DNA of 64,000 nt from Mantamonas sphyraenae STR306 (Eukaryota > Protista > CRuMs). Position numbers and translations under genes: made by a program. Of this stretch, positions 2,795 to 34,496 are shown one piece after another (positions within the stretch are counted from its first letter, which is position 1; each line of letters starts with the position of its first letter). The stretch spans positions 186,001 to 250,000 of the forward strand of contig JAPMXV010000058.1 in NCBI GenBank assembly GCA_026936335.1, read 5' to 3'. The notes below the pieces were generated by a model. The model did no database searches. It was given only the letters and a program-made list of their open reading frames with translations, and was not told where the DNA came from.

Positions 2795-5700
2795 TCAGCT
2801 GAATGCAAACCCGGTTCCTCCCTCTTCAATGGCCAGCCGTAGCTTGGCAGCAAGGGTGTCTGCGTCGGTGTAAGCGGGCAGTTTGACCATGTTGAAGCAG
2901 GTGGATGCCGAGGGCAGCTTGTCGACGTCGGGCACCTTGTGCACCGTCAGCGGCGGCTCAAACACATACTGCAAGGGTGCACGTGCACACCCGGTGGCAA
3001 ACAGCAGAAAGGGTCCTGTCAGGTCTGGTTCGTCATGCAGTAGTTGCCACAGGGCCTGCACCACAGGATGGGAGTCATCGTAGCCTTGTGCGTATTGCAC
3101 CACATTGCGCAGCGCGTCCACGTCGTACGTCTCCTGTCCACACAGGATGAGTTCCAACTCTTCCTCGGTGAGCATGTGCACCATGGAACTTGGCACGATG
3201 TCGGAGAAGCCACGGCATAGGGCAGCGAGCTCCCGTTCGGCCTCTCGTGTCAATTTGTACTCCACCAACAGGTCCAGATACTCCAGTTTGTTGGCATTGG
3301 TCACTGTGCGATGTGCCCCACCCTTGCACAGCTCGATTTCCTCACCCTGCTCGTTGGTGATGCTGAAGCGCTCGTCCAGGATGCCCTCGATGTCGTTGTC
3401 ACGCACCCACAGGATCTGATTGTCATATACGTGGCGGTCGATGGTGCGTATGTCGTGGTAGGACAGTGCGCGCCCCAGCAGCCGCTTGTAGACAAAGCGG
3501 GACAAGCGTGCGTCGAGCAACTCGCCCTCCAGCATGCACTTGGCCATGAACCGTCCTGCAAACTCAAAGTACCGCAGCAATCGTGCATTGCCTCCGCCTG
3601 CATGTGCCTGTGGAAAGTAGCGTCCGTCGTCCGAGCGTGCAAACAGTTGCTGGTGTGTGAACAGTTCCCGCGATAGCAGTGTCACAAACTCACGTCGCAC
3701 ACCCTTGATGTCCAGCGCCTCTTCGTTGGCAAATGTCACCTTCCACTTGCGCAGCAACTCGGCGCGCTTGCGTTCGCCAAACGCCGCGTACGACGATTTG
3801 AGCAGCCGGGTGCGATCGATCTCCCAGTGATCCACGGGGTCGGTGGGCGACAGATGCAGTTTGATGTACGCTCGCTTGATCTGCAGGTCAAACAACACGG
3901 GTACTCTGCGAAAGAGAACCTGGTGTGCCGTGGCTGTGGAGGAGGATGAGGATGAGGACGACGAAGACGACGATGATGACGCACCGCTCGCTTCCAATCC
4001 CATCACAAGGGACATGTCACGTGCATAGTGATCGGTGAGCCATGTGGCATAGAAAGCATGCGTGGGCATGTACTGCCAGGCTTGGTTGCGGCGCAGGAGG
4101 GCGTTGAGGAGCTCCAGGAGCATCAGACAGCGAGGATCCGTACGCACGAGCTTGGCTGATGCATCGTCGCTGGACGCAACTGTGTCCAGCAACGAGGCGA
4201 GTGCATGGTGACAGAACGCAACGATGGCGTCCAGATGCTCCTGTGTGAGTGCAACATGGGTGTAGAACACATCGTCTGGGATCACACGCACCAGCTGCGC
4301 CAGCATGGCCACCTTGACATGGTTGTTGTTCTTTGCAGTCTGCATACCCAACCATCGCCAGGCATCTGCATCGCGTGTTTGACCGCTGGCCGCTGCCATG
4401 CGTGCAATCACTTCCGAAGCGAGTTGGCTGCTGATCACCTGCATCAGGTGGCTGTTGCTCTTGCTGCCACCTCCCTGCACACGCACTCTGCTCATCGCGT
4501 CCATCAACGTGCGTGCGCGCAGCAGCTGCAACGATGTCTCGGCGAGCCAGATCCCATCGGCATCCACACGCAGTTGGACCATGCGGCTGCACCACAGCAG
4601 GGCGTCCATGTTGCTCATGGCATGGAGTGTGTCCCCATCACGCACAGACACGTACTCCTCGCTCTCCACGGATCCTGGTTGCATCCATTCGGCCAGTGTC
4701 TCCCAACGCCCGTCCTGTGTCTCTTTGTGCTTGCGAAGCACCATCGAGAGGAACCCACCGGCCACAAGTGTATGCCTGGGCCCCTGGCCCTGTGCACATG
4801 CCACCAGACAGTCCACGAGTGTCTCGAGTGCGTCTGTGTCTTGCAACGGGGCAGCGGACGACGCGTACTCGTCAAACAGCGCGTCTGCGTCACGGTCTCC
4901 ATACACACGTGCTGCGCTTTGCCACAGAGCCCATGTGAGACCCATACTATGTGCCTGTTGCACATTTGCAGTCGCCAGCGCGTGCACTGCCTGAAGGAGA
5001 GGCACTGCAGGAGTCGGCGGGGTTCCCGGGTGCATCACACGCTGGCCAAACAGCGTCCACAGCGGTTCGTGATTCATCAGCACATCCACAGATGCGGTGT
5101 CTCCCTGAGCCAGGTGCTGCACCGTCTCTAGGGCATATGCCGGTTGGACGCCAGCTTCGATCCACTCGCACAGGCCCGCCACTACATCCTTGGACACTGC
5201 TTCGTCTTGAATCTGCACACAGTCAGCCACAGACGCTGCCAACTCGTCGTGGTCCACGCCCAGGGACAGCAACCATGCAGCCAGCGTCCGATCAGCCACA
5301 GGCAACGCGAGGTCCTCTGGAAGCACATCCAGAAGCTCCACAGGCAGCACTGCGTCGTGCCAATGACACAACGCGGCAAGGAAAGACGTGGCATCCTGTG
5401 CACTCCATGGCAGATGCGCCAGTTCGGCGATCCAATCCCGCAAACCAACAGGCACACCTGCTTCGTGCTGTTTCAGGTTATCCATCGACGCCTGAAACGC
5501 CTCCATCACGCGTACCATGTGTGCATCGTCGCTCAGGCGTCCGCTGTACATGCATGCCTCGTGCACCATGGCGTATGCGAGTGCGGTGTGGCCGCGTTCT
5601 TCCATGTTGTCCATGCCCACCACTGCCTCCCATAGCTTCACCAGCGCCTGTTCTGTTGGTTGTCTCTCTGTCACAAGGGCATCTGCATCTTCCACATCTG

Positions 5701-8700
5701 CGGCTGCCTCGTCCACAAGGGAGCGCACGTCGGTGTGATCTCCGTCGCCGTTCGCAATGTCACCAGCCACACGGAGCATGCGTGTTGCAAGGCTCTCGTC
5801 GCCCGTCTCACTCGTAGGTGCACGCAGCATCTCACACAGCTGCGCGTGTTCCTCTGTCTCGGACGACACCAGATGCAACATCCGTTTGGCAAGCAACGCA
5901 TCCTCCAACGCCACAGCCATGTGAGCTACGTATGAGTGTGGACACAAATCATCCTGGAGCACATCTACGAGTGCCTCGTGTGTGTTGGCACCAGTCTTTG
6001 TCAATGCTTGTGCAGCTTCGGATGCGTCGATGTGGGCCTTGGCAAGCAAACGCAGCGCTGTGCCTTCGATTGCGCCCGTATGCATCACAGCCGCCGCCAA
6101 ACCACTTGCTTCCACGTCCCACGACCCAGTGTCGTGCAATGCGTGCAGGGCATCCAGCGCAGCTGCGCGCACTGTGTCATCGGCCAGCAAATCGATCATC
6201 CGTGCAGCCAACGCGTCACCATCGTCCAAACGCCCCATCTCTGCACACGCATACGACACCATGGCCACATGGAGAGATTTGTCGCGGAGGAGGCCACCCG
6301 CAGGCAGCAGAATTGACTGCAACGCAGCAGACGCTTCTTCTGATTCGCCAACATGCATCTCCAGCAACGCACGCACAGCCAATGCACCCTCCACATCCAT
6401 GTCATGTGCACAACACACAGCCAGTACCTGTACAAAGAGCACGCACACATTGTCGATGCCGCTCTTGGGTTGCCAAAGACGCAACAGACGCTCCAACGCC
6501 ACATGCATGCTTGTGTCTTCTTCATCATCCTCAGCATCATGTGCATCCATCACTTGCAACACATACTCTAGCCCCACGAGTGTCTCGCGCGGCTGCAGCG
6601 ATTTGCAGCGCATCAGTTGGAGCAGATGGGGCGACGGGACGGATTCCGCCAATTTGCTCAGCCAGGGGCCTTCCACGCGCACCTCGCTCAGATCCATGGC
6701 TTCCCTGTGCTGGCTCGCATTGTCGCCCAACCCACGCCAGCTGGCCTGTACACTGTCCCCGTCGTCACACATCATCAGCAGCGACCTCAGCAACGGCTGC
6801 TCACGCACATCGTCTCGCCGCGCACGCAGTGCATCCGGCAACGTCACTCGCGCTTCCCATGCAAACAGTGTCAGCAACGCCATGTGAAGCTCGTCCGTAG
6901 CATCCTCCTGCACATTGGCGAGCTGACGCAACACAGCTTCGAGAGCAGTCAACATCGCGTCGTGGTCGTCATCCGCCACATCCTCGCCGCCATTGGCTGG
7001 CATGTGAATGCAATCGACGGCCTGAAGCGGTTCCAGGAGCAGATTATGTGCTTGGACGGCGTGCAGCAGCACAAACTGTACAATTGGCAGGTGTTGCGCC
7101 ACCTGCGTGCTACCCAATGCCTCCAACCACGCCTCTGTGTGTCTCTCCAGCATGGTCACTTCATGGTGTGCTGCGTACTCCAACACAGCTGCACCGAGGC
7201 CATCCATCGCCTTCTGCACGTCACGTTCCTGCGACGCACGTTCAAACCCACCGCAGCTGTGCATCACGACCACATGTGCCACAGCACGCACTTGGTTGCT
7301 GTCCAATCCGTCCCAGGGCATCGCTGCAGGCGACAGCACGCTTGCACATGATGCCACGGCCCATCCCACGGCTTCCAACGCGCGCGCCTCTTTGTACCAC
7401 CCCCGTTCGCGCCTGCCACTGCTTGCAGGTGTGTTTGACGCCGATGCACTGGTTACGCTCATGTCTGCGTCGCTGTGCAGGAGCAGCTGGAGCAGCGGGT
7501 GTCCCAGCTGCGCCAGCACCAGTGATGGTTGCAGGTATCCCGCCTGTAGTGCGCTGTACAACCCCTGCAGGGCATCCACCTGTTCCCGTGCATACATGCG
7601 CACAGGGAGTGCACATACATGCGACAAGGCGTCGACGTAGTCCTGTTGCCTGCTGCTGTCCTGCGATTCCTGAACACGTGCAGCCAGCCCCTGCAGCACA
7701 GGTTTCACATTGGCACGCACATCCAACGCCACGCGGTAATACTCCACAGACGTACGCCAAGACGACACTCGTGCCTGCCACTCCTGCACAGCCACCTCCA
7801 GACTGTCGATTGTCGCTTCCTGACTCGCCACAGTTTGCTTCAAACTCCTTTCCTGCTCCTCCAGCCTCTCCAGACGTGACTTGAGCGCCTCCTTGCCATC
7901 CAACATGGCCTTCAGTGCACCTTCCCTCTGCCTGATGGCCTCTCCGGCCTCCATGGATTCCTGCAGCATGGCCCTGACTTCGCTCACCTCCTTCTTGGCC
8001 TCCTGTGCCCGCTTCCGTTCCCGTTTCTCTCGCTTCTCTGCCTCCTCCGCCTTTGCCCGTGCCTCTTTGGCCTCTTTGGCCGCCTCACCATGCTTGCGTT
8101 GCCACTGCTCCGCGGCCTGGGCGTTTGCTTCATACGACGCCTCGGCAATGGACAACGCATACTTCAAATCGTCACGTTCTGTGCGCATCTGTTCCAACAA
8201 ACCCTGTGTTTCCTGTCGCTGCTTCCTCTCTGTGCGTAGTTTGCTCTCCATGCCCCGCAATCGCTCCACTTCGGCGCGTAGTTCATCCACCTCGTTCCGC
8301 AGCACTTCTCGCTCGCTGTGCAGCAGTGTGATGTCCACAGCGTTCACCTCCTTGTTTGTGTCCACCTCCCTGTGTGTATGTTCTCCCGTCTCTGTCTCAT
8401 CCTCCTCTTCCTCATCCTCGTGCTCGTCTGCCACCGATCCGGGCAGCGTCAACGCGCGAGGCGTTTTGGGCAGCGGCTCCAGCGTTCCCGCGTGCCTGTG
8501 CGCCACAGGACTGCTTTGCATGACATGTACGTCATCCTCATCGTCGCTCTTGTGACCCAGATCTTCCGTGACATCCATGGGATCGTCGTCGTCGTCGTCG
8601 TCGTCGTCTGCAACGGGACTCATCAGTGGGTTGATCTCGCTCTCACTCGTTTCGTGGGTGCTGGGCTGCACCATGAGCACACGTCCACCATGATTGGCAC

Positions 8701-8827
8701 TGTGTGTGCGTGTGCGTTGCCACAGTCGCCACAGAAGCACCCACGACACCACCAGCAGTGTGGAGACCACAACAAGCGCCACTCCCGTCCCATCCATCGC
8801 GCGTTGGCGACGCGGTCGCTCTGCCAT
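2795..8827 (-). CDS. Large HECT-domain E3 ubiquitin ligase with N-terminal transmembrane helix and coiled coil (~2010 aa, apparently intronless)
   Basis: C-terminal HECT motifs (F..EEALDIKGVRREF, FLLFATG, LPSASTCFNMVKLPAY with catalytic Cys, terminal GFAFS); hydrophobic VALVVVSTLLVVSWVLLW near the N-terminus. Confidence 0.92.
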   Translation of the reverse strand: MAERPRRQRAMDGTGVALVVVSTLLVVSWVLLWRLWQRTRTHSANHGGRVLMVQPSTHETSESEINPLMSPVADDDDDDDDDPMDVTEDLGHKSDDEDDVHVMQSSPVAHRHAGTLEPLPKTPRALTLPGSVADEHEDEEEEDETETGEHTHREVDTNKEVNAVDITLLHSEREVLRNEVDELRAEVERLRGMESKLRTERKQRQETQGLLEQMRTERDDLKYALSIAEASYEANAQAAEQWQRKHGEAAKEAKEARAKAEEAEKREKRERKRAQEAKKEVSEVRAMLQESMEAGEAIRQREGALKAMLDGKEALKSRLERLEEQERSLKQTVASQEATIDSLEVAVQEWQARVSSWRTSVEYYRVALDVRANVKPVLQGLAARVQESQDSSRQQDYVDALSHVCALPVRMYAREQVDALQGLYSALQAGYLQPSLVLAQLGHPLLQLLLHSDADMSVTSASASNTPASSGRRERGWYKEARALEAVGWAVASCASVLSPAAMPWDGLDSNQVRAVAHVVVMHSCGGFERASQERDVQKAMDGLGAAVLEYAAHHEVTMLERHTEAWLEALGSTQVAQHLPIVQFVLLHAVQAHNLLLEPLQAVDCIHMPANGGEDVADDDHDAMLTALEAVLRQLANVQEDATDELHMALLTLFAWEARVTLPDALRARRDDVREQPLLRSLLMMCDDGDSVQASWRGLGDNASQHREAMDLSEVRVEGPWLSKLAESVPSPHLLQLMRCKSLQPRETLVGLEYVLQVMDAHDAEDDEEDTSMHVALERLLRLWQPKSGIDNVCVLFVQVLAVCCAHDMDVEGALAVRALLEMHVGESEEASAALQSILLPAGGLLRDKSLHVAMVSYACAEMGRLDDGDALAARMIDLLADDTVRAAALDALHALHDTGSWDVEASGLAAAVMHTGAIEGTALRLLAKAHIDASEAAQALTKTGANTHEALVDVLQDDLCPHSYVAHMAVALEDALLAKRMLHLVSSETEEHAQLCEMLRAPTSETGDESLATRMLRVAGDIANGDGDHTDVRSLVDEAAADVEDADALVTERQPTEQALVKLWEAVVGMDNMEERGHTALAYAMVHEACMYSGRLSDDAHMVRVMEAFQASMDNLKQHEAGVPVGLRDWIAELAHLPWSAQDATSFLAALCHWHDAVLPVELLDVLPEDLALPVADRTLAAWLLSLGVDHDELAASVADCVQIQDEAVSKDVVAGLCEWIEAGVQPAYALETVQHLAQGDTASVDVLMNHEPLWTLFGQRVMHPGTPPTPAVPLLQAVHALATANVQQAHSMGLTWALWQSAARVYGDRDADALFDEYASSAAPLQDTDALETLVDCLVACAQGQGPRHTLVAGGFLSMVLRKHKETQDGRWETLAEWMQPGSVESEEYVSVRDGDTLHAMSNMDALLWCSRMVQLRVDADGIWLAETSLQLLRARTLMDAMSRVRVQGGGSKSNSHLMQVISSQLASEVIARMAAASGQTRDADAWRWLGMQTAKNNNHVKVAMLAQLVRVIPDDVFYTHVALTQEHLDAIVAFCHHALASLLDTVASSDDASAKLVRTDPRCLMLLELLNALLRRNQAWQYMPTHAFYATWLTDHYARDMSLVMGLEASGASSSSSSSSSSSSSSTATAHQVLFRRVPVLFDLQIKRAYIKLHLSPTDPVDHWEIDRTRLLKSSYAAFGERKRAELLRKWKVTFANEEALDIKGVRREFVTLLSRELFTHQQLFARSDDGRYFPQAHAGGGNARLLRYFEFAGRFMAKCMLEGELLDARLSRFVYKRLLGRALSYHDIRTIDRHVYDNQILWVRDNDIEGILDERFSITNEQGEEIELCKGGAHRTVTNANKLEYLDLLVEYKLTREAERELAALCRGFSDIVPSSMVHMLTEEELELILCGQETYDVDALRNVVQYAQGYDDSHPVVQALWQLLHDEPDLTGPFLLFATGCARAPLQYVFEPPLTVHKVPDVDKLPSASTCFNMVKLPAYTDADTLAAKLRLAIEEGGTGFAFS

Positions 8828-8845
8828 TGCAAACCCACCTCTATC

Positions 8846-9661
8846 ATGGCTGACGACGACGGACTCACACCTGTGTTTGTGGAAGTGAAGGACAAGGAGG
8901 TGAGTGACATGATTGCCCCGCAGTGCACACGCGACGTCTGCCTGAGCGCTGGCAGCTTTGTTGGTCATCTGGCTCTTTGGCGCGAAAACAAGTGGCCGTC
9001 ATACGCAGCACACGGAGCCATATGCGCCTGGAAAACCACACCCACGTGTGCATTGCTGCGGTGCAGTGACTCACATCCTACTCATGTGTGTGTCTGCATT
9101 TCCCCACAGGCGTTCTACGAGCTGCAGGAGGAGATGCGCGCCACGCAGAAGAACCTGAACCAAGCCCACCAGTCGTTGGCGCTTCGTGAGCGTGCCAAAC
9201 GCCGCATTGAGCTGACGGTGGCCGAGGTTGGCGCCCTGCCCGACGATGTGGTCACGTACAAGAGTGTGGGTAGGTTTGCACAGCCACGCATACGTGCCCC
9301 AGGCAGCCCAAACACAGCAGCCGTTTCCTCCCGTTTTGCCAAGTGTGTGATCACGCGCTGCCCCTCCCCACACCACCACGCTCCGGACACAGACGACACA
9401 CACACACACACACACGAGCACATCCGCACGGCCTGCTGACACACCATCCCTGCGCACGCACGCACTGGTGCAGGCAAGATGTTTATGCGTGTGGAGAAGC
9501 CCAAGTTGCTGGGGCAGCTGGACGACGAGGCCAAGCAGATGGACGCACACATTGAGGATGTCAAGGAGCAGGTCACCTACTACGAGGAACAGGCCAAGAC
9601 TCAGAACGAAAAGATTGACAAGCTGGTGGTGCGTCACGATGCCCCTCCCGCCGAACAATGA
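8846..9661 (+). CDS. PFDN1: Prefoldin subunit 1 (3 exons: 8846-8899, 9110-9269, 9474-9661)
   Basis: Spliced product AFYELQEEM...RRIELTVAEVGALPDDVVTYKSVGKMFM; in-frame GT-AG introns at 8900-9109 and 9270-9473. Confidence 0.85.
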
Positions 9662-9689: not shown

Positions 9690-11634
9690 TCAATAGAAAT
9701 CAGTTCGACGCCTGCCCACACGACTGCTGCTGCTGCTGCTGTTGCTGTTGCTGCTGGATGATGATGACGATGAGGATGTCGAGGAGCTTGTGCGTGAATA
9801 GGCGTAGCTGGGCCCCGGATCTTCCTTGGGCGCCTCTGCATGCCCACTCTCCACTGCTTGCCGGTTGCCCTCATCATACTCCTCCCGTGTGCGTTTGTAT
9901 CCACCATACTCCGGTGCCTGTGCCTCCCTCTGCTCCCTCATGGGCGGTGGTCCCCCTGGCGATCGTGGTCGCATCGGAGGAGGGGGCGATGATCGTTCCC
10001 GTCGTGGCGGCGGTGGCGGCGCTCCTCGTTCCCTCTCTCGTTCGCCCCAATCCCGTTCCCGTTCCCGTTCCCGTTCCCGTTCCCGTTCCCAATCCCGATC
10101 CCGTTCTCGCGAGCGCGAGCGTTCATATTCCCGGGGCGGCGGTGGTCCACGTCCTCCTCGCCCACCATACTCACGGTGGTCGTACCCACCTCCACCTCGT
10201 CCATAGTCCCGATCCCGGTGGTCGTAGTCTCGTCGACCGCCCCCGTAGTCCCGTCGACCTCCGCCCCCGCCATAGTCGCGCGGCGGCGGCGAATCCCGAT
10301 ACCCTCCTCCACGGCCCCCACGGTAGTCATCCCTCCTGCCACGGTACCCACCTCCACCACCACCTCCACCTCCGTATCCTCCACCACCTCCTCCGTATCG
10401 TCCTCCTCCTCCTCCTCCTCCTCCTCGCGGTCCTCGGCCCCCTCCGCCTCCTCCTCCTCCGCCGTATCCTCCGTATCCGCCCCTGTAGTCGCCTCCACGA
10501 CGTCCCTCGGGTCGCACCACACGCCGTTGCTCTGCACGTCGTCCTGTGTACACCACATTCTTCTTGTCTGCTGTGCGTGTTCCTCCAAGGCCTCCTCCCA
10601 GTCGCCGCGGCTTCCACTCGGGCACTGTTCGGCCCCGCTCCACGTCCACCACCACGCGTCGTCCGTCGATTTTCCGTCCATCCGCACGGTTGAACGCCTC
10701 TGTGTGCCCGTGTGCCCATTCTTTCCTGTGTCAGTGTCTCTTCCCGTCTGCCCCACGCCCCGCGCACATGCGTCGCCTCACCTTTCATCGCCTCCTCCTC
10801 CTCAAACTCCACAAATGCGTATCCCCGCGGCTTGTCGCTCTCCTTATCATACACCACCGTCACCTGAGTGGTCCATAGTGTGTGTATGAGTGCGTCCACA
10901 TGCCGTGTAACATCCGCATCATCAGTCATACGTGTCAGTGAGCTGCCCCCCCATGCTGCCCTCCCACACACACCTCCCCAGTGTGTCCACACCCTCACTT
11001 GCGCACCTTTGAAATCTCTCCAAACTCGCCAAACTCCCGTCGCAGTGTCCGTTCGTCTGTGTCGTAGCTCTGTGTACGTGTGTGCATACGTGTGTGCCCC
11101 GCAACCGTGTGTCAGTCGCAATCTCCCGCGCGGAACCTGAGCATCGCCCCTCCCTCACCCCCTCTAACCTCCCCTCCGTCACCAAAAACCTACCAGTCGT
11201 CCCACAAACAGGGTTCGATACGCTGTCTCTGGGTCGCTCCCATCGTACGGTTTGTCTGTGGTGATGAATGCCCACCGTGTGTGTGTGTCAGTGGTGGAAC
11301 CGGGAACTCAAGCCACCACACCTTCCCAATTCCCCTTCCCCCCTGTCATCCACATACACTCTTTCATGGCCTCTTCCAGCTTCTCCTGGTTGGCTTCGTA
11401 TTTCTCCTTGGCAATCCGTGCCTTGCGTTGCTTCTCCGTCTCCACACCCTCGGCAGGCTTGTCCAACGCCTCCTTGAGCTCGTCATCCTCCCGCAACAGC
11501 GCCAGCGTCTCTGCCAGACCCGTCAGCGGCTCCTTCCGCGTTTCGTACGTTTTGTACGTAAACACAGGCGCATACTCCAGCTCCTCCGGCGGCTCAAACA
11601 TCGCCTTGAGGTGCGGCGGCAGGAACTTGGTCAT
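9690..11634 (-). CDS. SNRNP70: U1 snRNP 70 kDa protein (multi-exon)
   Basis: N-terminus [13 protein letters not shown] (cf. MTQFLPPNLLALF), RRM RNP1 [35 protein letters not shown] signature, RGG/RE/RS tail. Confidence 0.95.
10052..10090 (+). repeat. (CCCGTT)n hexamer repeat encoding the (ER)n tract of U1-70K
   Basis: Direct tandem hexamers visible in the sequence. Confidence 0.8.
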
Positions 11635-11669
11635 TGCTGGCGGACAGGAGGACGGTTGGCTCCTTCAGC

Positions 11670-11763
11670 GCAGGCCTTTGCGACCGACCGTGAACACTGC
11701 TGTGCTTTGTTGAAAAACAATAAAAATCCATCCTTTCGATGGTAGTCGGTCGCAAATCCCTGC
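11670..11763 (-). ncRNA. Candidate Fanzor omega-RNA scaffold (multi-stem four-way junction); putative guide would continue to about 11650
   Basis: Perfect 12-bp stem (11677-11688/11745-11756) extended by a 5-bp stem (11670-11674/11759-11763), enclosing three hairpins (11728-11742, 11707-11720, 11693-11706). Starts 67 nt downstream of the Fanzor-like stop codon. A G-U pair favours the minus strand. Confidence 0.55.
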
Positions 11764-11790
11764 CGTCAGCCGCCCGTCGCCCCGCCCACC

Positions 11791-11796
11791 TTTATT
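11791..11796 (-). promoter_or_regulatory. Putative polyadenylation signal AATAAA of the Fanzor-like gene
   Basis: TTTATT on the + strand, 34 nt after the stop codon. Confidence 0.4.
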
Positions 11797-11829
11797 CCGT
11801 GTTGTTTTGTGCGATTGTGCGATTCACTC

Positions 11830-14800
11830 TTACTCCTTGCGCAGTTGCGCCCGTTGCTTGCGCCACCTCCTCGATGACAGCTTTGTGTGAGTCTTCCTGT
11901 CCACGCCCGAGATGGCCAGCACCAACAGGGTGGCGATGGTCACCGCAGCGTCCGTATCCTTGTGCTGCGCCCATCGTTCGCAGCGTGCGCAGTCCCACCA
12001 TCTTCGGCTACAGCCCCGCCTCGTGTACGATTTCGGGCTCAGGGTCACCTGGTGTCCACACTCGCGGCACAGAGCAGAGGTGTACGCCTCGCGTGTGACC
12101 ACGAGCGTATGTGTACGACTCAGGTGTCTCTTGACGTCCGCCAGAGGGACCCGCGCACTGAAGCCGCCGTTCCCAAAAGCAAGCAGGGAGCGCTGCTGGA
12201 CCAGCCTGTCAATGTCCGAGATGGAGGCCGAGATGCCAGCAAGGTACCTGTTGCGGAGCTTGCGGTGTTCGTGATGATGCGCATCCACGAGGTTCCGGTG
12301 CGGCTCTCGCTGTGCAAACTCTTCCCGCTTTGCTTGGTTCAGTTCTTGCCATGTCGGGGTAGAAGAAGCAGATGATGATGGTGATGAGGAGGAGGAGGAG
12401 GAGGATGATCGTGCGTTGGATCGTAGCGTACGTCGGGAGGACGCCGCTGCTGCTGCTGCTCCTTTGCATCTTCTGACTGCTTCCGTGGCAGCCTGGGTCA
12501 GGACGTTCTGCTTCTTCCTGAGCTGACTGGTCCGCAGCATATGTCTGTAAGATGGTGTTGGCAATGGAAAGTAGATACCTGCGTCCACGTGCAGAACATT
12601 GTCGCGATCGAGTGTCGCTGACATCTTGTTGTGGTGAAAGACAGCGACGCAGCTGGTGCAGTCAACGTTGGGGTCCATCCCGATTACAGGTATACCAGCA
12701 GGCGTCCACAAATCGTTCTGCCCTAGTGTACGGGCCACTTGTTTGTCGGACTCGAGCAAGATTCCAGTGCGCTTGCCAGCAGAAGTTTGCGATGGCTTGC
12801 ACTCCGCATCCAGGTGCTGCATGGCGGCTGTAAGGCTGCTCTCGTCGACACCAGACTCTTCAAACCACTGCTCCAGCTTGGGCATGGCCGCTCTGCCGTA
12901 CGCTTGATAAAAGAGGCTCGCCATATGCATGACGTGGAACCACGATAGATCCCGCACTTTACCCTTCGCGTCGAACCCAACACGGACACATGCGACACGC
13001 AGTGCCTCGTCGACGTCTGATGCTGCCACGCAGCCCTGAGCCCCTTTCACCTTGCGACGGGCTCCAACCGCCAGGCTATGCGGGGCGTAGACAGTTTGAA
13101 AGATCGATCGACCGTCGTTGCCACCGAGGGTGATCCCCTGCCCTCGAGTCTCCTGCCCTGTGTCTGAGTTCCAGAGCCCCGGTAGAACGAGCATGGTGAC
13201 TGCGTTTACAAGGTCACCTCGGTGGGCTGCCCATCCAGCTTCCGTTCTCAACATGCCGACATGTGTTCGCCCTTTGATCCTCTCCAGTGCACGCTGTGAA
13301 CCTGGGCACAGAACAGCAGCGTGGTCCACAATAAGCTGGTTGAGCTGGCGAGCGAGCACGTTTGACTTTGCTCGCTCATCCCAGGGCAACGTCTCGATGA
13401 TCGCGGTGGCGGCTGCTGCTGCTGCTGCTGCTGCTTCGCCTCCCCTCGTACTCAGGTGCTTCAGAAAGTTGTATGCGACCCGAAACAGCTTAAACTTTAG
13501 ATCGGACCCCGATACCGAGACCGTGCAACGTGCAGTCGCGCGTGGGCGAGGTACAAGCTGGACAGCGTGGCCACATACCTCAGCCTCCAATTTGAGCAGA
13601 CAGATGTAGGACGCGACACGGGCCTGGTTCTTCTCGTCCTCCTTTGCCTTTGAGAGCAAAGGCGAGCCAGCCACGACCTTGCTCACCTTCACTTTCAGCG
13701 GCAGCAGCTGCGTCCTCCAGTCCATCTGCTGCTGCTGCGCAACCACATGCGCCTCTTCATCTTCATGGTCCTGGTCTTGGTCCTCATCTCGATCGTGCTC
13801 GTGATCTTGGTCTGCTTCGGGTTCTCCATCGTCGTCCACCTCCTCGACCTCCTCTGCTTTCACCCTCTTCTTCCATGATGCGAGTGACATCCCCGACACG
13901 TATGCGCATGCCACCTCCGTTAGCTTCCGCGGGAGCTCCGGCACAGCATCGCACACCATTCTCTTCACCGAGGACGTCCAGTGCCTGGTCGCAAGGTTCC
14001 ACATGGTCCTCATCTGACGTGCAGCTGACCCCTCAGCCAGCAGATTCTCGAGTTGCTCACGCTGCTCCTCAAGCTCCAGGCCGTCGTAGTATGGACTCGC
14101 AATATGGGCGCACAACACTGCGTACAAGAGCTCCCGTTCCTGCACGAAGCGACTGTGAGTGTCGACCAGGACTGCATCCAATTCCTGGCGTTGGCTCTCA
14201 GTCATCCTGCTGTCCGCTGCGTCCTGAATACTCCCACGTGCCACGGTCGTGGATTTTCCCGCCAGTCCCATCACTCGTTCCACGCCTCCGTGTCCACGGC
14301 CGTCATGCATCCCGTACACACCAGACAACGCCTGTTCCTCGGTCGGGCGGCGGTCGTTTAGCAGCGCTGCAACCTTCCGTCCAAGCTTGTAGAACGATTC
14401 ACGCTCTGCTGTGCGCGCCTCGTCAATCTCATCCTCATTGTCCTCTTTGCTTGACTCCTGTACGTAGCAAACATCCTTGCCACAGAGCAGTTTGGCCAAA
14501 CGGCCCTTCAAGTAGGTGCCCTTGGCCAACATCGAGTCACACAGTGTCTCCACCTCGTCGCTGTTGCTGCATGAATCAAGTCTTCCCGCCTCGACATCCG
14601 CGAGCAGCTCCTCTCGCTTCTGTTCCACTGCCTGCTCGAACTGCTGCATGTTGTCGTACCTTTTTGCCTTCTTCTTTGCCTTTTCAATCTCCTCCTGCAG
14701 CTCAGTCTGCCGTTCAATCGCGTTGTCGAGCGAGGCACGCTCCTGCGTCCCCAGCCGTATCCGTCCTTGAGCTGCAAACGCATCGACGACGTCGGACATC

Positions 14801-17766
14801 CTACCATCGTCGTGGTCGACACGAATGGTGTATGTCCTGGCGTTCACCACACCGTCACTGAGCACCATTGCCGGGCCCGGGGCAGCTGCAGGTTCCGTTT
14901 GGTTTGGTTTGTGCTCCGGCACCCGCGTGTTCCTCGCCAGCTCCATCAACTTGTCCACGGAAGACGCCAAAGAGTAATCCGCACACAGTTGGCGCATGAC
15001 ATACTTGAGCTGCATACTGGTCCTTGTTCGCATGGCCGGGCGAACGGATGCCAAAGCGAGACGCAGACACGAATCGTCGCTCATTGCCGGACGCAGCTCG
15101 CCGGCGCTGTCGGCGCTGTCGGCGCTGGATGTGGCATATGTGTCCTCACGTGCGCTGGGCATTGCATGTGCCTCTTGCATGTCCTCTGTCTGCATCTCAT
15201 CCGACTCCACTTCGTTTTCCAAGTCCTCTTCTTCCGCCCCGGCTCTTCCGCCGGCCTCCCAGGCCTTTACAAACGCCTCTTCATCCTGGACATCCTGGAC
15301 ACCATTCTCAAGGTCCTCTGTCTCCATACCCGACTCCACTGCGTCGTCAGCGACGTGGTCCACCTCCACGGTTTGCACATCTTCGACATCTGCGCTGGCC
15401 TCGGCCTTCCAGACCCTGTATGCCTTGGCGAACGCATCCTCGTCCATGGTGACGTCGTTTCCCCGTTCGTCATCGATTTGTACCCCCAGCGTCTCGGCCA
15501 GCAAGGTCACCTGTTCCACCATGCCGCTCCTGGCATCCTTGATTTCGACATCCGACGCGCGTCCACGAGCAGGTGCTGTCGGCTCAAGTGTGGACGCCTG
15601 CACGTTGGAATGAATGATTTGGTCCACAGCGTTCTGTACACACCACTTCTGTTGTTCTTCGGCAACGCGCTGTACACTGTCGCAGATGCGTTCGCGATGG
15701 AAGTGGAGAAGGCCAACGGGAGCACGCTGTACAATGGCGCCCGCACAGGTTCCACCCAAAAGCGCATACGTGAAGAAGCGTGCGTTTGTGCTGTCGTTGC
15801 CCACGTGCACAGCTCTCAGATCTGTGTTGCCAGCAAGGTACTCGTTCCAGTTGTCCTGCCGGCACCAGCCGCACCGGACGCCTCTCGCCATGAGTGCACA
15901 AGCGTCTGCACCCACCACGAGTGCATCTGCGGCGTGCTGAATGGCGCACAGGTTTGCATCGTCTGTTGCCCACACGCAGAGGCGCTGGTCCACCCAAACG
16001 TTCCCGTCGTCGCTGATTGAAACGCGGTCGTTGTCCGCACTCCTCAGGGTCTCGTACAGCCCACGCAGCCGGTGCTTTTTGGTGTACGTGTGTACGTGCG
16101 CGTCCAGCTCCTGCCGGAATGATGCAGGGATCGCATGGATGGCCGCCAGAACCAAATCCATTTCCACCTCCTCCTCGACGCTGCCTTCCTTGCTGCTGCC
16201 ACCCTCCACGCCGCCGAGTATGAAGTGGTCGAACCCAGCAACTTCAATGTCGTCGGCAAAGCGCTGGACAAGCGGACGCACGGACCGGACAAGTTTAGCC
16301 AACGTTGCCGTTTGTGCAAACGCGGCTGAGACAAAGCTCCACGTCCTCACCGGACGGCCCTCAGGCGGGTTGGTACACTCCAGTGGGACGTACGTGGTCA
16401 TACCCTCGGGTGACATGCGAGCGAGCGCCTCGACGATGTCATCGCCACTGGAGTTCACGTCCAGCTGCTGATCGAGAGCATCGCCGCCGTTGGTCAGCAC
16501 AACGGCGTTGTAGTCCCCCAATGTTGCTGGTTTCGGTGCAGGAAGAGGCACGCGAGCACCAGCTTGACCGTAAGGCTTGGCACGCTTCGCCGTTGAGGCT
16601 TCGGGGGCGACAGGGGCCGTGGCGTGTCCCGGCTTGATGTGAAACGAAGGACAGGAATCGCTTGTTCGGCCTATCATACGAGCGCTGTATGTTCGGCCAA
16701 AGTGCTTCCCCACGTACCTCGCCACCTCTTTGGCAGAGAGCCTCGCCGCAGCAAGTGTGCACTCACACGCGTCGCCCTTGCGGGCTACTTCGATGCACAG
16801 CGCATACTCAGACATTGCGTAGACGCGGCCATTGTGAATGAGAGATGCCTTCAGCAAGTGGCTGATGCTGAGCCAGCACAGGTCATCGTTTCGCAGCGAG
16901 CGTGAGCGGCGTGTTTGCTTGAGAAAAGGCCAGACCTGGGTCGTGAACCGCTTGCGTGCTTCCTTGGCGCGTCTCAGCAACGTGGGGCTGGCTTGGCATT
17001 TTGTGGTACTGATGTGATGCAGAAACTCCGTCTGCTCGGGGTACTGCACCCTCGCCTGCGCCCACCGATTGGGCTGCTTTTTCTGCGTGCTTTCGCCAGT
17101 TTTGAGCGCCGTGTACATCTGCCGTGCTTGATCTGTTCGAATGTCGTCGAGAAAGGTCGTGCGTACAAAGCGGTGTTTGCTCCGTTGCCTGGTGGGCCTT
17201 CTAGGTTTGACGGTGTGCCACGAGGAGGAAACCCATTCTGACTCAGGCTCGACCTCGATATCGGTATCCATGGGGTCTTTCGTGACCGTGTCTTTGCCTT
17301 TGCTGTCTGCCTCAGTTTGCTGACGAGTGTGTGTGTGTGTGTGTGTCGTGAGGGGTCCCACACGTGTGTGAGCCGCAGCAAACGGAATTGAGTGAGGCGG
17401 AATTCAACCTACTCGCCCATTGCCACTTCTGCTCGAGGAGGAGGAAGCTGAAGACGTTGAACGAGATGCACGGCCTCGACGGCCTCGGGATGCGCTGCGG
17501 GATGCACGGGATGCGCGACCTCCCCTGGAATGTGTCTCTTGGTTCTGTACACGTTGCCGTTTCTGCTGTCGCCACTCCAACGTTTGCCTGCTCCTTCGTT
17601 CACGTCTATTTTCCCGAGCCTCCACGCTACGCGGTGAATGAGATACCTCATCCCGTGTGTCTTCATCTTCTCGACCCCTCTTGCCGCCCTCATCACACAG
17701 CAGCAAGAGAACCAACATGAAGAAGAACCAACGGAAGCGCATGTTGTTTTGGCGACCACGGCGCAT
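11830..17766 (-). CDS. Giant Fanzor1/TnpB-like RuvC nuclease (main exon 11830-17319; probable upstream exon 17413-17766)
   Basis: RuvC-I VIGMDPN (D1563 in ORF-track numbering), LLAFGNGGF, rearranged RuvC-II VVTREAYTSALCREC (E1758), second CARC zinc pair, RuvC-III HKDTDAAVTI (D1802). A phase-0 GTAGGT...CAG intron at 17412-17320 joins the upstream ORF in frame. The start codon is uncertain. Confidence 0.85.
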
Positions 17767-18065
17767 AGTCGAGCAGTCACTCGTACATTCTCATTCCAAC
17801 GTGTAGGGTGGCGTTGACAACATTCATTTCAGTGTCCCAGGGTCCTCGCGGCTCTTGCGAGGAATCGTTCTGCAAACACAGCGAGCTTGTTCAACATGGT
17901 GCACTTACGCATGATCGAACCGTAAGAACCCGCAGAAGAGCGAAATCATGTCTTGGTGAACATTCTATGTGTTTCTGGGCGTTGTTCTCAAGGGTGGAGC
18001 CACGTTCACGCTCAATTGCAACCTTCAGCGCAAGGTGTTGGTGCATTGTTGTTCCATTTTGTCAA

Positions 18066-19151
18066 TCAATCACTGTCGCTGGCCCCTTCGCTGTCTTCCC
18101 CATCGTCCATCACACGTCCAAACACATCGTGGTCCTTGGGCATCACCTTCTTGCGCGTAAACTTGTTGCGTCCGCTGCGATCCACAGCACTCGCACTGCG
18201 GCCCAACTCGTCCGACTTGTCAAAGTCCTTCATCTTGGCACTGCCCGCCATAAAGTCGTCTGCCAGCACGTCCCATCGTGAGCCTTCGTTGTCCGCGTCA
18301 GCCTTGCCCATGGACGGCACCGCCTCGCCACGGCTATCGTTGTCGTTGTCGTTCGACGTCGTCGTCTTCTTCTTCTTCGTCTTCCCATCTCCTCCCACCA
18401 CTTCAGTGCCACCCTTGGTCAGCAGGTCCAGGAAGGAACTCTTGCTCATTTTGTCCACCTGAGCCTGCTTGTGCAGCGTCCGTACGCTGCTGCTCTTCTC
18501 CTTCAGCGTGCGCTGGTGTTTGTTCACCGCGTTAAATAACTGCACCACTCCCCGGTTGGCAATCCTCTTGAGCTGTTTCTCCATTCCGGCGTCCTTCCCA
18601 TACGTCGGCTTCACATGGCCCTTTGCCTTCTTCTTCCTCTCCCGTCGCGCCTCCCGTGCAATCTCCTCCTCCATCTTCTCCTGTGCCAGCTGCCGTTCCT
18701 TCTTCCTGTTCATCGACATGATCGGGTTGGCCTCCTGTGCGTGGCAGTGGTGTGTATGTGTGTGCACGTGTGCGTGTGTGTGTGGGTGGGTGCCCTCTTG
18801 GTGTCAGATTCTCCTACGCCGGACGGCCAATGCATGCCTTTCACCCCGCCGCCCACACAGCCTTACCTTGCCACCCTCCTCATCCTCGCTTCCGCTCGAC
18901 GCGCCCTCTCCTGTCTCGCCGGCTTTGGCCCCGTCTGTGCTCGTCCGCCTGCGCTTCTTCTTGGGCAAGGGCACCGTGAGCAGCCTGTTCATCGCTCGCT
19001 CGAATCCGCCACCTTCCTCTTCCGCCTCCTCCCCGCTCAGCTCTGCTTCCCCGTCACTCTCTGGCTGTCCTCCCCACACAGCCTCCACGTCCACATCCTC
19101 GTCAAACGATTCATACCCGTCCTCCTCGTCCTGCTTCCTCTTCCCAGGCAT
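18066..19151 (-). CDS. RRP15: Ribosome biogenesis protein RRP15 (intron about 18735-18866)
   Basis: EKQLKRIANRGVVQLFNAV, KSSFLDLL and WDVLADDFM are Rrp15p family motifs. Confidence 0.88.
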
Positions 19152-19296: not shown

Positions 19297-22200
19297 ATGA
19301 GCACTGTGGTCACTCGCAGCAGCCGTGGACGTTCGCGCACCGCCGCTCGTCACCTGCTCTCCCTTCCGACCACAAACGGCATCCCTTCCGCAACCTCCTC
19401 CTCCTCTGCATCTGCCTCCCACTCCCTGTCCTCCCACACTGTCTCCTCCGCCTCTACCCGTGCCCTCACCACGCTGGGGCCTTCCCACGGCGCCCGTTTG
19501 TCCTCGCTTCCGTCCGCCCCTTCCGCCTCGGTGGCCTGGAACTCCTCCTCCTCCTCCCTGGCCTCGACCCCGGCACAAGGCCTCGCTGCAGGCATGTATG
19601 CCCTGCGTAGCCATGTTGCGCGTCCGCTGGTGGCCAGTGGGTCCCATGCCACCCCTGTGCGTGGCATTACAACACGCGTCTCGTCCGCGCTTGTTCGTCC
19701 CACGCGCACACGCGCCAAACACGCGTCTTCACTTGCCGTACGTTTGTCCACGAACAGTGCACGCACTTGCCCACCCGTCCCACCATCCGCTGCCATTGTT
19801 TCAGAGTCCATCCCATGCTCACTCGCGCTTGCTGGCCATTTCGGGGCTTTTTCGCGTGGCGCGGATTGCACCCCACACAGACGCGCGCCATGTCCTCGGT
19901 TCCGGGCAACGGCGGAGGCGGCGACGACGACGACGACGAGTCGCAGGCCACCAAACGGCCACGCAGCACAAAGGTGGATGCGTCCGACCTGCATGTGATC
20001 CACGATGATGACGACGACGACGACGACGAAAGCGACGACGAACACAGCGACGACGACGACAGCGACGATGAAGACGACCAGGATGGGGTGAAGAAGGGAA
20101 AGGACAAGGCCAGCAAACACAAGGAGGGTGCTGAGGGAGAGGACGATGGCAAGGACAACGCCTCGCTTGCGAATCCGTCGTTTGTGGTGCCCGACTCTGC
20201 ACCCGTGGTGCCCATCTACAAACGCCATGTGTTTCCGGGCATTGTGGCACCTGTGGTCATCACCGACGACAAGTTGGTGGACCAACTCGACGTCAACTCC
20301 ACCGCGGCGCTGTTTCTGGTCACCAATGACGAGCTGACGGCCGATCCTGCGCCCGGCGAAGCAAGGCCTGTCATTCGTAACTACGACGATTTGGCCGACG
20401 AGGGTGTGCTCGTGCGCATCCTGGGCATCCAACGAAGCAAGATCGGCTCGCAGGTGCTTGTGGCGGGCATTACACGTGTGCAAAAGACGGGTTTGCACGC
20501 AGGCAACACCAAACCTCGCATGGAGGTCACCCTGGAGGCCATCAAGGACTCCAAGTATGACAAAGAACGACCGGAAATCAAGGCATACACGGTGGAGATT
20601 GTGCACACGCTGAAGGAGCTTGTCAAGCTCAACCCATTCTTCAAGGAGCAGCTGAGTGTCGTGCTGGAGCGTGTGGATCTGAGCAACCCCAGCGAACTGG
20701 CCGATTTGGCAGCTGCCATGACTACAGCCAACCCGGAACAGTTGCAGGAAGTGATTGCTGCACGCAACATCCCGGAACGCCTGAGCAAGGCGCTGTTTCT
20801 GCTCAAGAGCGAATTGGACGTGAGCAAGGTGCAGCAAAAGATCAGCCGCGAGCTGGAGGACAAGGTCAGCACGACACAGCGCAAGTACATGCTGAACGAG
20901 CAGCTCAAGGCGATCAAGAAGGAGTTGGGACTGGAGACGGATGAGAAGGAAGCGCTGCTGACCAAGTTCCGTGGGCGGCTGGAGACCCTGGAGGTGCCCC
21001 AAGAGGTGATGGGTACCATTGAGGAGGAAATGGCAAAGCTGGGCTCGTTGGAGCCCAACTCGAGCGAATTTGGCGTCACACGCAACTACCTGGACTGGTT
21101 GACCCAGCTGCCGTGGGGTGTGTACTCGCAGGACAGATATGACCTTGACTATGCGCAGGGGGTCTTGGATGACGACCACTACGGCCTCAAGGACATCAAG
21201 GAACGCATCTTGGAGTACATTGCCGTGGGCAAGCTGGTGGGCACCGTGCAAGGGGGCAAAATCATCTGTCTCGTGGGCCCACCAGGCGTGGGAAAGACCA
21301 GCATTGGCAAGAGCATCGCACGTGCATTGGATCGCAAGTTTTTCCGGTTCAGCGTGGGAGGCATGACGGATGTGAGCGAAATCAAGGGTCACCGACGCAC
21401 GTACGTGGGTGCGATGCCGGGCAAGCTGATCCAGAGCCTAAAGACGGTGTCGACGTCCAACCCGGTGGTGATGATCGACGAAATTGACAAGCTGGGCCGC
21501 AGCATCCAGGGCGACCCGGGATCGGCGCTGTTGGAGGTGTTGGACAAGGAGCAGAACGACAAATTCCTTGATCATTACCTGGACGTGCCGGTGGACCTCA
21601 GCAAGGTGTTGTTCCTGTGTACGGCCAACGTGATGGACACGATCCCGGCCTGGTTGCAGGACCGCATGGAGGTGTTGCGTCTCAGCGGCTACGTGCTGGA
21701 GGAAAAGGTGCACATTGCCAAGCAGTACCTGATCCCACTGGCACGCAAAGAGGTGGGTCTCAAGGCGAAGCAGGTGACCATCCGCAGCACGGCGCTGAGC
21801 AAACTGATCTCCGACTACTGCCGCGAGGCCGGCGTGCGCAAACTCAACCAAATGGTGGAGCGTATCTTCCGCAAGGCTGCGTACATGGTGGCACGTGGCG
21901 AGGAGGAACAGGTGGTGGTGACGGCAGCCAACCTGGAGGAGTTTGTGGGCAAACCCATCTGGACGAGCGACCGCTACTACAAAAAGAGCATGACGGGCGT
22001 GGTGATGGGACTGGCCTGGACGTCCATGGGGGGTGCCACGCTGTACATTGAGACTGTGCCCACACCGACACCGACGGCGCCGCGCAGGAGGAAGAAGGGC
22101 AACAAGAAGAGGAATGACCTGGTGGAGGACAACGACGTGCTGGACAACGACATCCGTGTGAACAGTGACAACAACGACGACGACGACTACGACGACGACG

Positions 22201-22691
22201 ATGACGACAGGAAGCGCACACAGGCCACAGGTAGGCTGATGACCACGGGACAGATGGGCGATGTGATGAAGGAGTCCACATCGATTGCCTACACGGTGGC
22301 GAAGCGCTTCCTGTACAACCTGGACCCGAACAACGACTTTTTGCACACAGCCACGCTGCACATGCACCTTCCCGAGGGTGCACAGCCCAAGGATGGGCCG
22401 TCGGCAGGTGTGACGATGGTGACGTCGCTTCTGTCGCTGGCTCTGGACAAGGCACCGCGAGAGAACCTGGCCATGACGGGTGAGGTGACACTCACGGGAA
22501 AGGTGCTGCCCATTGGCGGCGTCAAGGAGAAGCTGATTGCCTCGCGTCGCAGCGGCGTCAAGGTGGTGATCTTCCCCGAAGGCAACCGTAAGGATGTCGA
22601 CGAGCTCGAGGATTACCTCAAGGAAGGCATGGAAATCCACTTTGCGGATTGGATTGACGATGTGGTGCGTGTGGCGGGATTGATTGATTGA
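19297..22691 (+). CDS. LONP1: Mitochondrial Lon protease (exons 19297-19737, 19881-22691)
   Basis: Walker A GPPGVGKT, HRRTYVGAMPG, IDEIDK, catalytic KDGPSAG and PIGGVKEK; Ser/Arg-rich presequence exon joined by a phase-0 GT-AG intron. Confidence 0.96.
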
Positions 22692-31986: not shown

Positions 31987-34496
31987 ATGTTCGCTCGTGT
32001 GACACGCCAACGCTCCTTGATGCACCGTCGTGTGCTGCCTCAGCAACAGCCAGCGCAGGGTCTGGGTGTCGTGGCCATGTACAGCACCGAGACGCTGAGC
32101 CCCAAGCTTTTTGACAAGGTTCTTGTTGCCAACCGCGGCGAAATCGCCTGCCGCGTCATCCGCTCCTGCCAGGACAACGGCGTGCGTGCTGTCGCCGTCT
32201 ACTCCGAGGCCGATGCAAACTCCATGCATGTCAAGAATGTAGGTCGAGCGTAGAGCCACCCAGAGGGCATCCCACATCTCCCCCCTCCTGCCCTCTGCAC
32301 AAGCACGCTTCCTTTCGTTAAAAGCCTCGGTCGACCCTCGTTTGCTTCAATCACCGAGGCCGCGGGTCCGTTTCCCTCTCGCCGACGCTTTTTCAGCCCC
32401 TTTGCGCTGCACTGTGGACCCCATGCTGCCAGAGTGCCACTCCACGTCATCCCATGGATTGCATGTTGCACTGTGCGTCCTTTGTGCCGCACTCTGTCTG
32501 GCCTTGCCTGTCCTTGCGCCTCGTTTGCTGCCGGAGCTTTTTGTCTCGACCCGCTTTTCCTGACACGAACAACCTCGGCCCCGCTCGCTGTGTGGCATCC
32601 CCCACCGACCATCAACCCAATCAGGCTGACGAAGCGTACCTGTTGGGTCCGCCTGCAGCCAGCGAGTCGTACCTGCTGGGCGACAAGGTGATTGAGACGG
32701 CCCTGAAGACCGGCGCACAAGCGATTCACCCCGGCTACGGTTTCCTGAGTGAGAACGAGGTGTTTGCCACAGCTGTGGAAAAAGCCGGCCTGACGTTCAT
32801 TGGCCCGCCGGCAGAGGCCATCCGCGCCATGGGCTCAAAGAGCGAGAGCAAGAAGATCATGGAGGCGGCCGGCGTGGCTTGCGTGCCGGGATACCACGGC
32901 GAGGACCAGAGCGACGATCTGTTGGCCAAGGAAGCCGACAAGATCGGATACCCCGTGTTGATCAAGGCTGTGTTGGGTGGTGGAGGCAAGGGCATGCGCA
33001 TTGTGCACGACCCGAAGGACTTTGCGGATGCGCTGAACTCGGCACGCCGCGAGAGCAAGAGCAGCTTTGGTGACGACCGTGTGCTTGTGGAGAAGTACTT
33101 GCAGAAGCCGCGGCACATTGAGATCCAGGTGTTTGCAGACAAGCACGGCGACGCAGTGTACCTGTTTGAACGCGACTGCTCGGTGCAGCGACGCCACCAG
33201 AAGATCATCGAAGAGGCGCCGGGACCCGGAGTGTCGCCCGAGCTGCGCAAGAAGATGGGCGAGAGTGCAGTGGCAGCGGCCAAGGCCGTGGGCTACGTGG
33301 GAGCCGGCACCGTGGAGTTCATCGTCGACAGCGAGGACGACTCGTACTACTTTATGGAGATGAACACGCGTCTGCAGGTGGAACATCCGGTGACGGAGAT
33401 GGTCACGGGCGAGGATCTGGTCAAGTGGCAACTGGCGGTGGCTGCAGGCAACCCGCTGCCCAAGACCCAGGACGAGCTCGTGCTGAGCAACCACGCGTTT
33501 GAGGCGCGCATCTACGCCGAGAACCCACGCAACAACTTCCTGCCCGGCACAGGCACGCTGTCCACCCTTCTGACGCCTGTGGAGACCGAAGACGTGCGCG
33601 TGGACACAGGCGTGCGCCAGGGCGACGAGGTCAGCATCTTTTACGACCCCATGATTGCCAAGCTGATTGTGCGTGGCGAGAACCGTGCCGCTGCATTGCA
33701 ACGCATGCGCAAGGCCCTGGATGAGTTCAAGGTCGTTGGCCTGCACACAAACATCGACTTTATCGGCCGTGTGTGTGCCAACCAGGCCTTCAAGGACGGC
33801 GGCGTCACCACCAACTTCATTGCCGAGCAGATGGACGACCTGTTGCCCCCTTACGTGCAGGCCAGCGACGAGGCATTGGCCCTCGCTGCCGTGGGTGGCG
33901 CCCTCAAGGCCCAGCAGCGCACACAGGCCGCACGCGAAGCCGTGGCCGACCGCAACAACCCGTTCCTCTCGGGCGATGGCAAGCGCTTCAACGGACGCGA
34001 CGGAATGGCGGTGTCGTTTGTGGAGGAAGGCGAGGAGGTGAGCGTGCGTCTGTACTCGCACGGCAACGGCGAGTACAGCACCGACGCCGTGCCCAGCATC
34101 CGCGCAACCCTGGAAGGCAACATCCTCAAGGCAGACATGCAGGGCACCCGTGTGACCGCAAGCTACATCGAAGACACGGACGAGGTGCAGCTCAGCATGG
34201 TCGGCTCCCACCACACCCACCACTTTAAGAAGCCCGTGCCCTCCTTCCTCAGCGGCGGCGCGAGTGCAAAGGGCTCGCTGGTCTCGCCCATGCCGGGCAA
34301 GATCACAAAGGTGATGGTCCAACAGGGCCAGAAGGTGAAGAAGGGCGATCCCCTCGTCGTCATGGAGGCCATGAAGATGGAACACACCATCAAGGCCTCC
34401 CAGGACGGCGTCGTCGGCGATGTCCTCTTTGCAGAGGGTGCTCAGGTGAAAGAGGCTGTTGAGCTCGTGCGCATGGAGCAGGAGGACGAGGAATGA
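31987..34496 (+). CDS. MCCC1: 3-methylcrotonoyl-CoA carboxylase alpha (biotin) subunit, intron 32239-32624
   Basis: [54 protein letters not shown] and biotin motif EAMKM; mitochondrial presequence. Confidence 0.9.

Follow-up and report, generated by a model that had tools for sequence, protein, structure and literature searches.

We have analysed a stretch of 64,000 nucleotides (contig JAPMXV010000058.1, positions 186,001 to 250,000; hereafter the window, whose own numbering is used throughout) from Mantamonas sphyraenae STR306, a deep-branching single-celled eukaryote described as a diploid CRuMs flagellate (PMC10492846), together with its whole assembly of 25,061,354 bases in 78 contigs. 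The window contains what is quite probably a non-autonomous transposon of the IS630/Tc1 type, which carries a giant Fanzor, most likely a Fanzor1, together with its omegaRNA and has spread by homing. The anatomy of the element, the selection on its gene, the rule of its target duplication, one footprint and a statistical scar at the left ends are direct observations. Above all, these scars would provide quantified genomic evidence of Fanzor homing in its own eukaryotic host, which is the chief novelty of the present work. The original prediction, made from the letters of the window, had described a giant Fanzor1-like nuclease at 11830–17766; it missed both ends of the element (11671 and 18028), and with them the transposon context, which provides the strongest evidence for function.

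The open reading frame (ORF) of the nuclease occupies 11830–17361 of the minus strand, encodes 1843 amino acids (aa) in the window translation and is open throughout. The start at GTG was set mechanically; counted from the first ATG the protein has 1813 aa, and predicted splicing lengthens it to about 1947 aa. The outsize protein and the unbroken frame of the original prediction are thus borne out, and so are the order of the RuvC motifs and the codon positions of D1563, E1758 and D1802. These acids, G1730 and the four zinc-finger cysteines are retained in all 8 of the 8 intact copies, including subfamilies that are 43–62% identical. That is, the catalytic Glu claimed to have moved next to the zinc finger, with a Gly at the canonical site, is kept in every copy, and both residues are also present in three other giant families.

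As to the class of the protein, the match to PF07282 (TnpB/Cas12f zinc finger) at residues 1752–1809 is weak and under the curated cut-off. A feature search of the ESM Atlas with the C-terminal 464 aa gives 0.96 to PF07282/PF26935 clusters, which come from giant viruses, Mucoromycota and green algae. In profile searches of solved structures, Cas12f and TnpB head the ranking, but with E=0.01–0.2 and with matches confined to the zinc finger and RuvC-III; sequence and profile searches gave no significant match to solved Fanzors. The published C-terminal motif D-X(125,275)-[TS][TS]-X-X-C4 finger-X(5,50)-RD (PMC3627910) is found as D1563, 197 residues, TS, C1765/1768/1791/1794 and KD1802 (Lys for Arg). 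E1758 and G1730 also agree with the rule of a Glu six residues before CxxC and a Gly or Pro at the canonical RuvC-II position. Since this relocated Glu marks Fanzor1 and Fanzor2 alike (PMC13565253), the "Fanzor1 signature" first proposed holds as a rearranged RuvC and not as a feature specific to Fanzor1. A TDG motif in WED is a Fanzor1 feature (PMC10711439), and its expected place before RuvC-I reads SDK in the window protein and TDR in P0005, a relative from M. plastica. The marks of Fanzor2 and IS607EU elements are not found, as the partner is a DD34E transposase, not a serine recombinase, and the target duplication is of 2 bp. Fanzor1 is a likely assignment because of the Atlas neighbours and the DDE-type host element. 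Overall, sequence and context suggest that the protein works like a Fanzor/TnpB. The evidence for a giant Fanzor-type nuclease under selection is good, and indirect support for its nuclease activity comes from the intact catalytic residues, the omegaRNA candidate and the end scars.

We have found nine full copies of the element in the assembly, i.e., the window copy, five others that are 96–98% identical to it and share its ends, and three diverged ones; eight of the nine have an open frame of 1780–1861 codons. The ratio of non-synonymous to synonymous substitution rates (dN/dS) between the subfamilies is about 0.2–0.3 overall, counted from residue 30 onward. It is 0.30 among the young copies and 0.14–0.40 per protein segment with the window copy as reference, and the last 100 residues are 88–97% identical between subfamilies that are only about 40% identical elsewhere. 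A dead or decaying frame is ruled out by these dN/dS values, and a domesticated single-copy host gene by nine copies at unrelated sites. A transposase within the giant ORF was searched for and none was found.

A transposase is encoded by a sister family (loci L025, L029, L021, L022, L024 and L026) which has its left end in common with the window family. This enzyme, a 346-aa DD34E transposase of the IS630 class with four near-identical open copies, matches PF13358 (E=2e-24) and NF033545 (142 bits, cut-off 100). The Fanzor of the sister family (1640–1685 aa) is unrelated-looking, and the right end of this family finishes CAG, not CTG. The N-terminus of this Fanzor shows a weak match to a ubiquitin-protease His-box (PF00443, E=0.002–0.003). 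In one copy, at L021/L039 (C46), the Fanzor gene is put out of frame by a long 66-bp tandem array that has expanded inside it; L006 and L022 are frameshifted too.

All 13 in-register elements have an identical dinucleotide at both ends, which is a 2-bp duplication. The duplicated dinucleotides are of at least 8 kinds (CG, CA, GG, CT, AC, TT, GT and TC), TA is seen at 0 of 16 sites, and the insertion context is YG-NN-CA with NN duplicated. The target motif has TG at 12 and CG at 2 of the 16 sites; it is a candidate target-adjacent motif (TAM), a role drawn from SpuFz1 (PMC10432273, PMC13565253), and is probably read jointly with the duplicated dinucleotide. In short-read contigs, another allele of the window locus reads flank-CG-CTG-CG-flank (X2, with a loose end before 18047), and an X1 contig has the same geometry. 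This is one footprint allele only. A duplication plus three bases is the rule for the excision footprint of Sleeping Beauty (PMC7827188), and the footprint allele locates the left terminus 7 nt beyond the conserved core. This allele also seems to lack 11 bp of left flank (18036–18046), between short repeats. A target duplication of 9 or 11 bp, as in MULE or hAT elements, was rejected as the rule, since unconverted copies have the terminus CAGTTGG with a 2-bp duplication and the footprint puts the cut there. Among the marks of IS630/Tc1/mariner elements, we thus observe the DD34E spacing (in trans), the 2-bp stagger and the 3-nt footprint, and not the strict TA. The transposon therefore appears to work like Tc1, as an atypical member with a non-TA target.

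The two ends behave very differently. Right ends are unvarying within each subfamily (16 of 16), whereas the left ends take 12 forms among the same 16 elements. Actually, the first 7–8 nt of the canonical left end, which starts CAGTTGG, are often replaced by the right flank of the same copy. The window copy and L003 each carry their own right-flank sequence at all 7 terminal bases; L002 and L021 match with a one-base slip, and some others at a single position or at two. Summed up, the matches between left end and own flank amount to 97 bases, against 54.6 +- 2.3 expected and a maximum of 66 in 100,000 permutations that preserved the 2-bp duplication and the CA bias. In addition, 15 of the 20 in-register departures from CAGTTGG are the own-flank base, with 4.4 expected. 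Truncated or internally deleted copies show a related pattern. Four of them (L034, L035, L037 and L038), i.e., three right-end fragments of 35–142 nt and one 0.8-kb ghost, have duplications of 8, 8, 16 (with one edit) and 10 bp at the 5' boundary, behind the same YG motif and with a chance of about 0.003 each. A fifth fragment has no duplication.

At the right end, the omegaRNA candidate is closed by a 13-bp stem, formed by the element terminus and an internal inverted copy of it, which encloses three hairpins; it has no match in Rfam. If a guide length of ~15 nt is taken (PMC13565253), the predicted guide is the right flank itself, and its single exact match in the assembly is its own site.

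These observations can be joined into a homing cycle. The transposase of the sister family can cut and paste the element into YG-NN-CA with NN duplicated, as the sequences at the common left end and the junctions indicate. By analogy with characterised Fanzors, an RNA running across the right end would then acquire a guide of ~15 nt from the right flank. The nuclease would cut at some distance into this flank, either in the empty allele on the homologue or at a site that had been restored precisely; known Fanzor cuts fall 14–21 nt into the target (PMC10432273). As the DDE transposase leaves footprints, the nuclease would more probably cut the naive homologue. With the right flank as guide, the break would lie within that flank, and of the two broken ends just the left one would carry a tail that does not match the filled allele. 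Judging from the scars, the right broken end would invade the filled allele and the element would be copied from right to left, while the left broken end keeps its tail of right-flank sequence. After complete copying this tail would anneal in register and overwrite the left tip of the element, and aborted copying would leave a right-end fragment between duplications of 8–16 bp. As in-register overwriting needs a filled template, homologous repair is implied. Homing by TnpB and IscB has been demonstrated experimentally (PMC10055086); cut-and-copy homing is so far established only in bacteria, and a 2026 review, which finds it shown for TnpB and IscB only, doubts its benefit for DDE transposons (PMC13565253).

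A working Fanzor could also coexist with scars made by the transposase and host repair alone, for instance if the right end alone were inserted, the target filled in and the left end joined at a microhomology, or through gap repair after excision. The highly imperfect terminal repeats and the atypical transposase make asymmetric strand transfer conceivable, and several conversions do stop at short microhomologies. We nevertheless regard this explanation as unlikely: most conversions are exactly in register and need a template whose left flank is already joined to the left end, the left side of an excision break has no tail of right-flank sequence, and the right-end fragments lack the left end entirely. 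Moreover, Helitron-borne Fanzors show the same pattern with another transposase (PMC3627910). It is quite improbable that the giant Fanzor binds its guide target without cutting, as an RNA-guided regulator or as a passenger kept for another role. Its size, the conserved signal-like start of exon 1, and the variants DPN for DPG in RuvC-I and KD for RD in RuvC-III would fit such a role; however, 3 of 3 catalytic acids are unvarying in the window family, the last 100 residues are the best kept of the protein, and the scars require a cut.

That the converted left ends are assembly or polishing artefacts of mixed filled and empty alleles is very hard to maintain. The genome is diploid with a haploid assembly, and the window locus is evidently heterozygous or mixed, but such an artefact should strike both ends, and the right ends are unvarying. 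The other window allele is a footprint and could not have supplied CTGAAGG. The converted left junctions found at L006 and L026 recur in short-read contigs (loose ends 18021 and 18023), which argues against polishing error, although the runs belong to a single study and could themselves have been the source of the assembly. Equally implausible is RNA-guided insertion as in CRISPR-associated transposons, where the Fanzor would lead the transposase to guide-matching new sites: in the sister family both proteins are encoded by one element and the targets resemble the left end (NN-CA), but right flanks of near-identical copies are unrelated past two bases, the nuclease site is intact, and the window guide has no second exact site.

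Several points do weigh against homing. For the window copy, RNA expression, the TAM, cleavage and the repair route are inferred. Covariation backs the fold of the omegaRNA with one compensatory pair. The right junction too reads TG-NN-guide, so that escape from self-cutting would have to depend on bases further upstream; C at -3 is found at 1 of 13 sites of the window family. Five of the 20 left-end departures are unlike the own flank, and we read them as inherited from the parent copy. The sample comprises 16 two-ended elements and 5 fragments, all from Fanzor-carrying families. Finally, both AlphaFold models have a pLDDT (predicted local distance difference test) of 40 on a shallow alignment, too low to judge the convergence of D-E-D.

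When the N-terminal and middle portions were searched against Pfam, NCBIfam, PHROGs and PDB, the N-terminal ~1500 aa received no assignment, which extends the claim of over 1000 unexplained residues. No fused domain could be demonstrated there, which is a caveat to "possibly a new fusion subfamily". By eye, one stretch follows the motif order of FEN1/XPG 5' nucleases, with most catalytic acids missing and at most 2–3 of seven left. It stands out from shuffles in none of the Pfam, PDB, HHalign or glocal comparisons, and scores against three host FEN1/XPG/EXO1 proteins are no better than those of shuffles, a weak test that also missed a sibling family with clearer motifs. A FEN1/XPG domain is thus not supported statistically. 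In a third family, the 1869-aa Fanzor of L028 (2988–8594, plus strand), FEN-type acidic motifs are clearer by eye near residues 250–470, with no match in Pfam or PDB searches. Since dN/dS is 0.2–0.3 from residue 30 onward, the long N-terminal part is selected protein and not read-through; its best explanation is an integral part of the protein, possibly an expanded REC/WED with accessory modules. A wider idea, which we put forward as a rather doubtful one, is that Fanzors of 1500–2100 aa form a multidomain lineage acting as a natural RNA-guided gene drive, with a non-TA Tc1-like transposase as partner and N-terminal modules (here degenerate and FEN1/XPG-derived) that steer the break of the naive homologue to homologous copying.

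The features of the element are collected below.

Table 1. Features of the giant Fanzor element in the window
Feature	Position	Strand	Remark
Non-autonomous IS630/Tc1-type DNA transposon	11671..18028	-	6358 bp, imperfect terminal repeats, without own transposase
Predicted 15-nt guide (right flank)	11654..11668	-	In 5' leader of host U1-70K
Right copy of target duplication (CG)	11669..11670	-	
Candidate omegaRNA scaffold	11671..11796	-	~125 nt kept in 7 loci, folding z = -3.67
Main exon, giant Fanzor	11830..17319	-	Internal first ATG 17271
RuvC-III Asp1802	11956..11958	-	Codon position and conservation
C4 zinc finger (TNB)	11980..12069	-	PF07282 E=8e-5
Rearranged RuvC-II Glu1758	12088..12090	-	Six residues ahead of zinc finger; Gly1730 in canonical place
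RuvC-I Asp1563	12673..12675	-	Unvarying across four giant families
FEN1/XPG 5' nuclease-like motif order	15727..16509	-	By eye only; residues about 285–545
Predicted intron	17320..17412	-	93 nt, phase 0, CA-repeat ahead of acceptor
Predicted exon 1	17413..17766	-	118 codons; phase-0 join with main exon
Conserved left-end core	18004..18021	-	Common to transposase-encoding sister family; GTGAAC core inverted at right end
Left-end conversion scar	18022..18028	-	CTGAAGG for canonical CAGTTGG; identical to own right flank
Left copy of 2-bp target duplication (CG)	18029..18030	-	
Target motif ..TG, candidate TAM	18031..18034	-	Upstream of duplication

The splicing of exon 1 onto the main exon is predicted from comparable upstream ORFs and in-frame donor/acceptor pairs in all four subfamilies; the two exons served as separate queries in searches of the spliced model. 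Short-read contigs of one run stop at 17318 and restart at 17447, which is suggestive of the 93-nt intron and no more. Exon 1 begins with a hydrophobic, signal-peptide-like start in all four subfamilies, odd for a nuclear nuclease, followed by a basic stretch resembling a nuclear localisation signal and by poly-Ser. Run X4, whose DNA label is a guess, has near-zero depth over 17719–17915 and high depth over the gene, a profile like that of an RNA run. The element sits in a ~70-bp gap between RRP15 and U1-70K (window 11634–11670 and 18029–18066), and the U1-70K start codon lies ~35 nt past it, so the omegaRNA would read into the U1-70K leader. Other genes of the window are ordinary host genes: a HECT ligase (2795–8968), a Lon protease (19767–22691), a biotin carboxylase (32454–34496) and a CTC1-like gene (39383–43909).

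Across the whole assembly, about 55–65 loci with open frames of 1480–2090 aa, in several families and with weaker matches included, match the giant-Fanzor C-terminal profile, as do four loci of 630–850 aa. Among 1.8 billion proteins, the sole convincing outside relatives are complete ORFs of 791–1836 aa from the M. plastica transcriptome. P0003 and P0005 (1637 and 1836 aa, complete) and P0004 share the C-terminal motifs (E=2.6e-5; HHalign 97.6%) and the giant size; they are unannotated, about 19% identical overall and known from the transcriptome alone, which indicates that giant Fanzors are transcribed in another species. Word-based homologue searches and viral and metagenome scans gave nothing useful, and no paper listed by our literature search names both Mantamonas and Fanzor.

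The role of Fanzors in their native hosts is an open question in the field, and one-sided scars may serve as a countable genomic signature of homing in any Fanzor-rich genome. The closest known systems are the Fanzor1 proteins of Mariner/Tc1 elements (SpuFz1, Spu-1; PMC10432273, PMC11423790) and the IS630-Tc1 Fanzor1 families of Punuivirus (bioRxiv 10.1101/2024.09.03.611062). The Mariner/Tc1 systems share with the present element the rearranged RuvC with a C4 finger, a cut-and-paste host with a 2-bp duplication, a right-end RNA running into the flank (a candidate here) and ORF-less "ghost" copies (here L028 and L035). A Fanzor in a Tc1-type element is thus already known; the present element adds a protein of this size kept under selection and a non-TA Tc1-like host. 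The protein has 1813–1947 aa, with 1500 selected residues, whereas Fanzors typically have 600–700 aa and about 800 at most (PMC11423790, PMC10711439), so it is about threefold the usual length and more than twice the reported maximum. Unlike in the Mariner/Tc1 systems, the duplicated dinucleotide is not TA and the target motif contains GC; the element predicts a non-AT-rich TAM, and a non-TA IS630/Tc1 transposase is of interest in itself.

With TnpB and IscB of IS200/IS605 and IS607 (PMC10055086), the element would share the right-flank guide, the left-flank motif and the repair from the filled copy. The setting differs, as it is eukaryotic and diploid with a footprint-leaving DDE transposase, and homing is read from scars here, whereas it was established by experiment there. 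The Helitron2-Fanzor elements CRe-1/2/3 of Chlamydomonas and MCi-2 of Mucor, described in PMC3627910, likewise keep their 3' ends intact, whereas their 5' ends are truncated or fuzzy, with variable duplications behind a fixed motif. They have another transposase, and the available text does not describe in-register overwriting of an intact left end. In Helitron-Fanzors truncated at the 5' end, Bao and Jurka reported duplications of 7–19 bp, which they almost never saw in Helitrons that lack a Fanzor; they left the cause open, and homing as proposed here would explain this anomaly, open since 2013.

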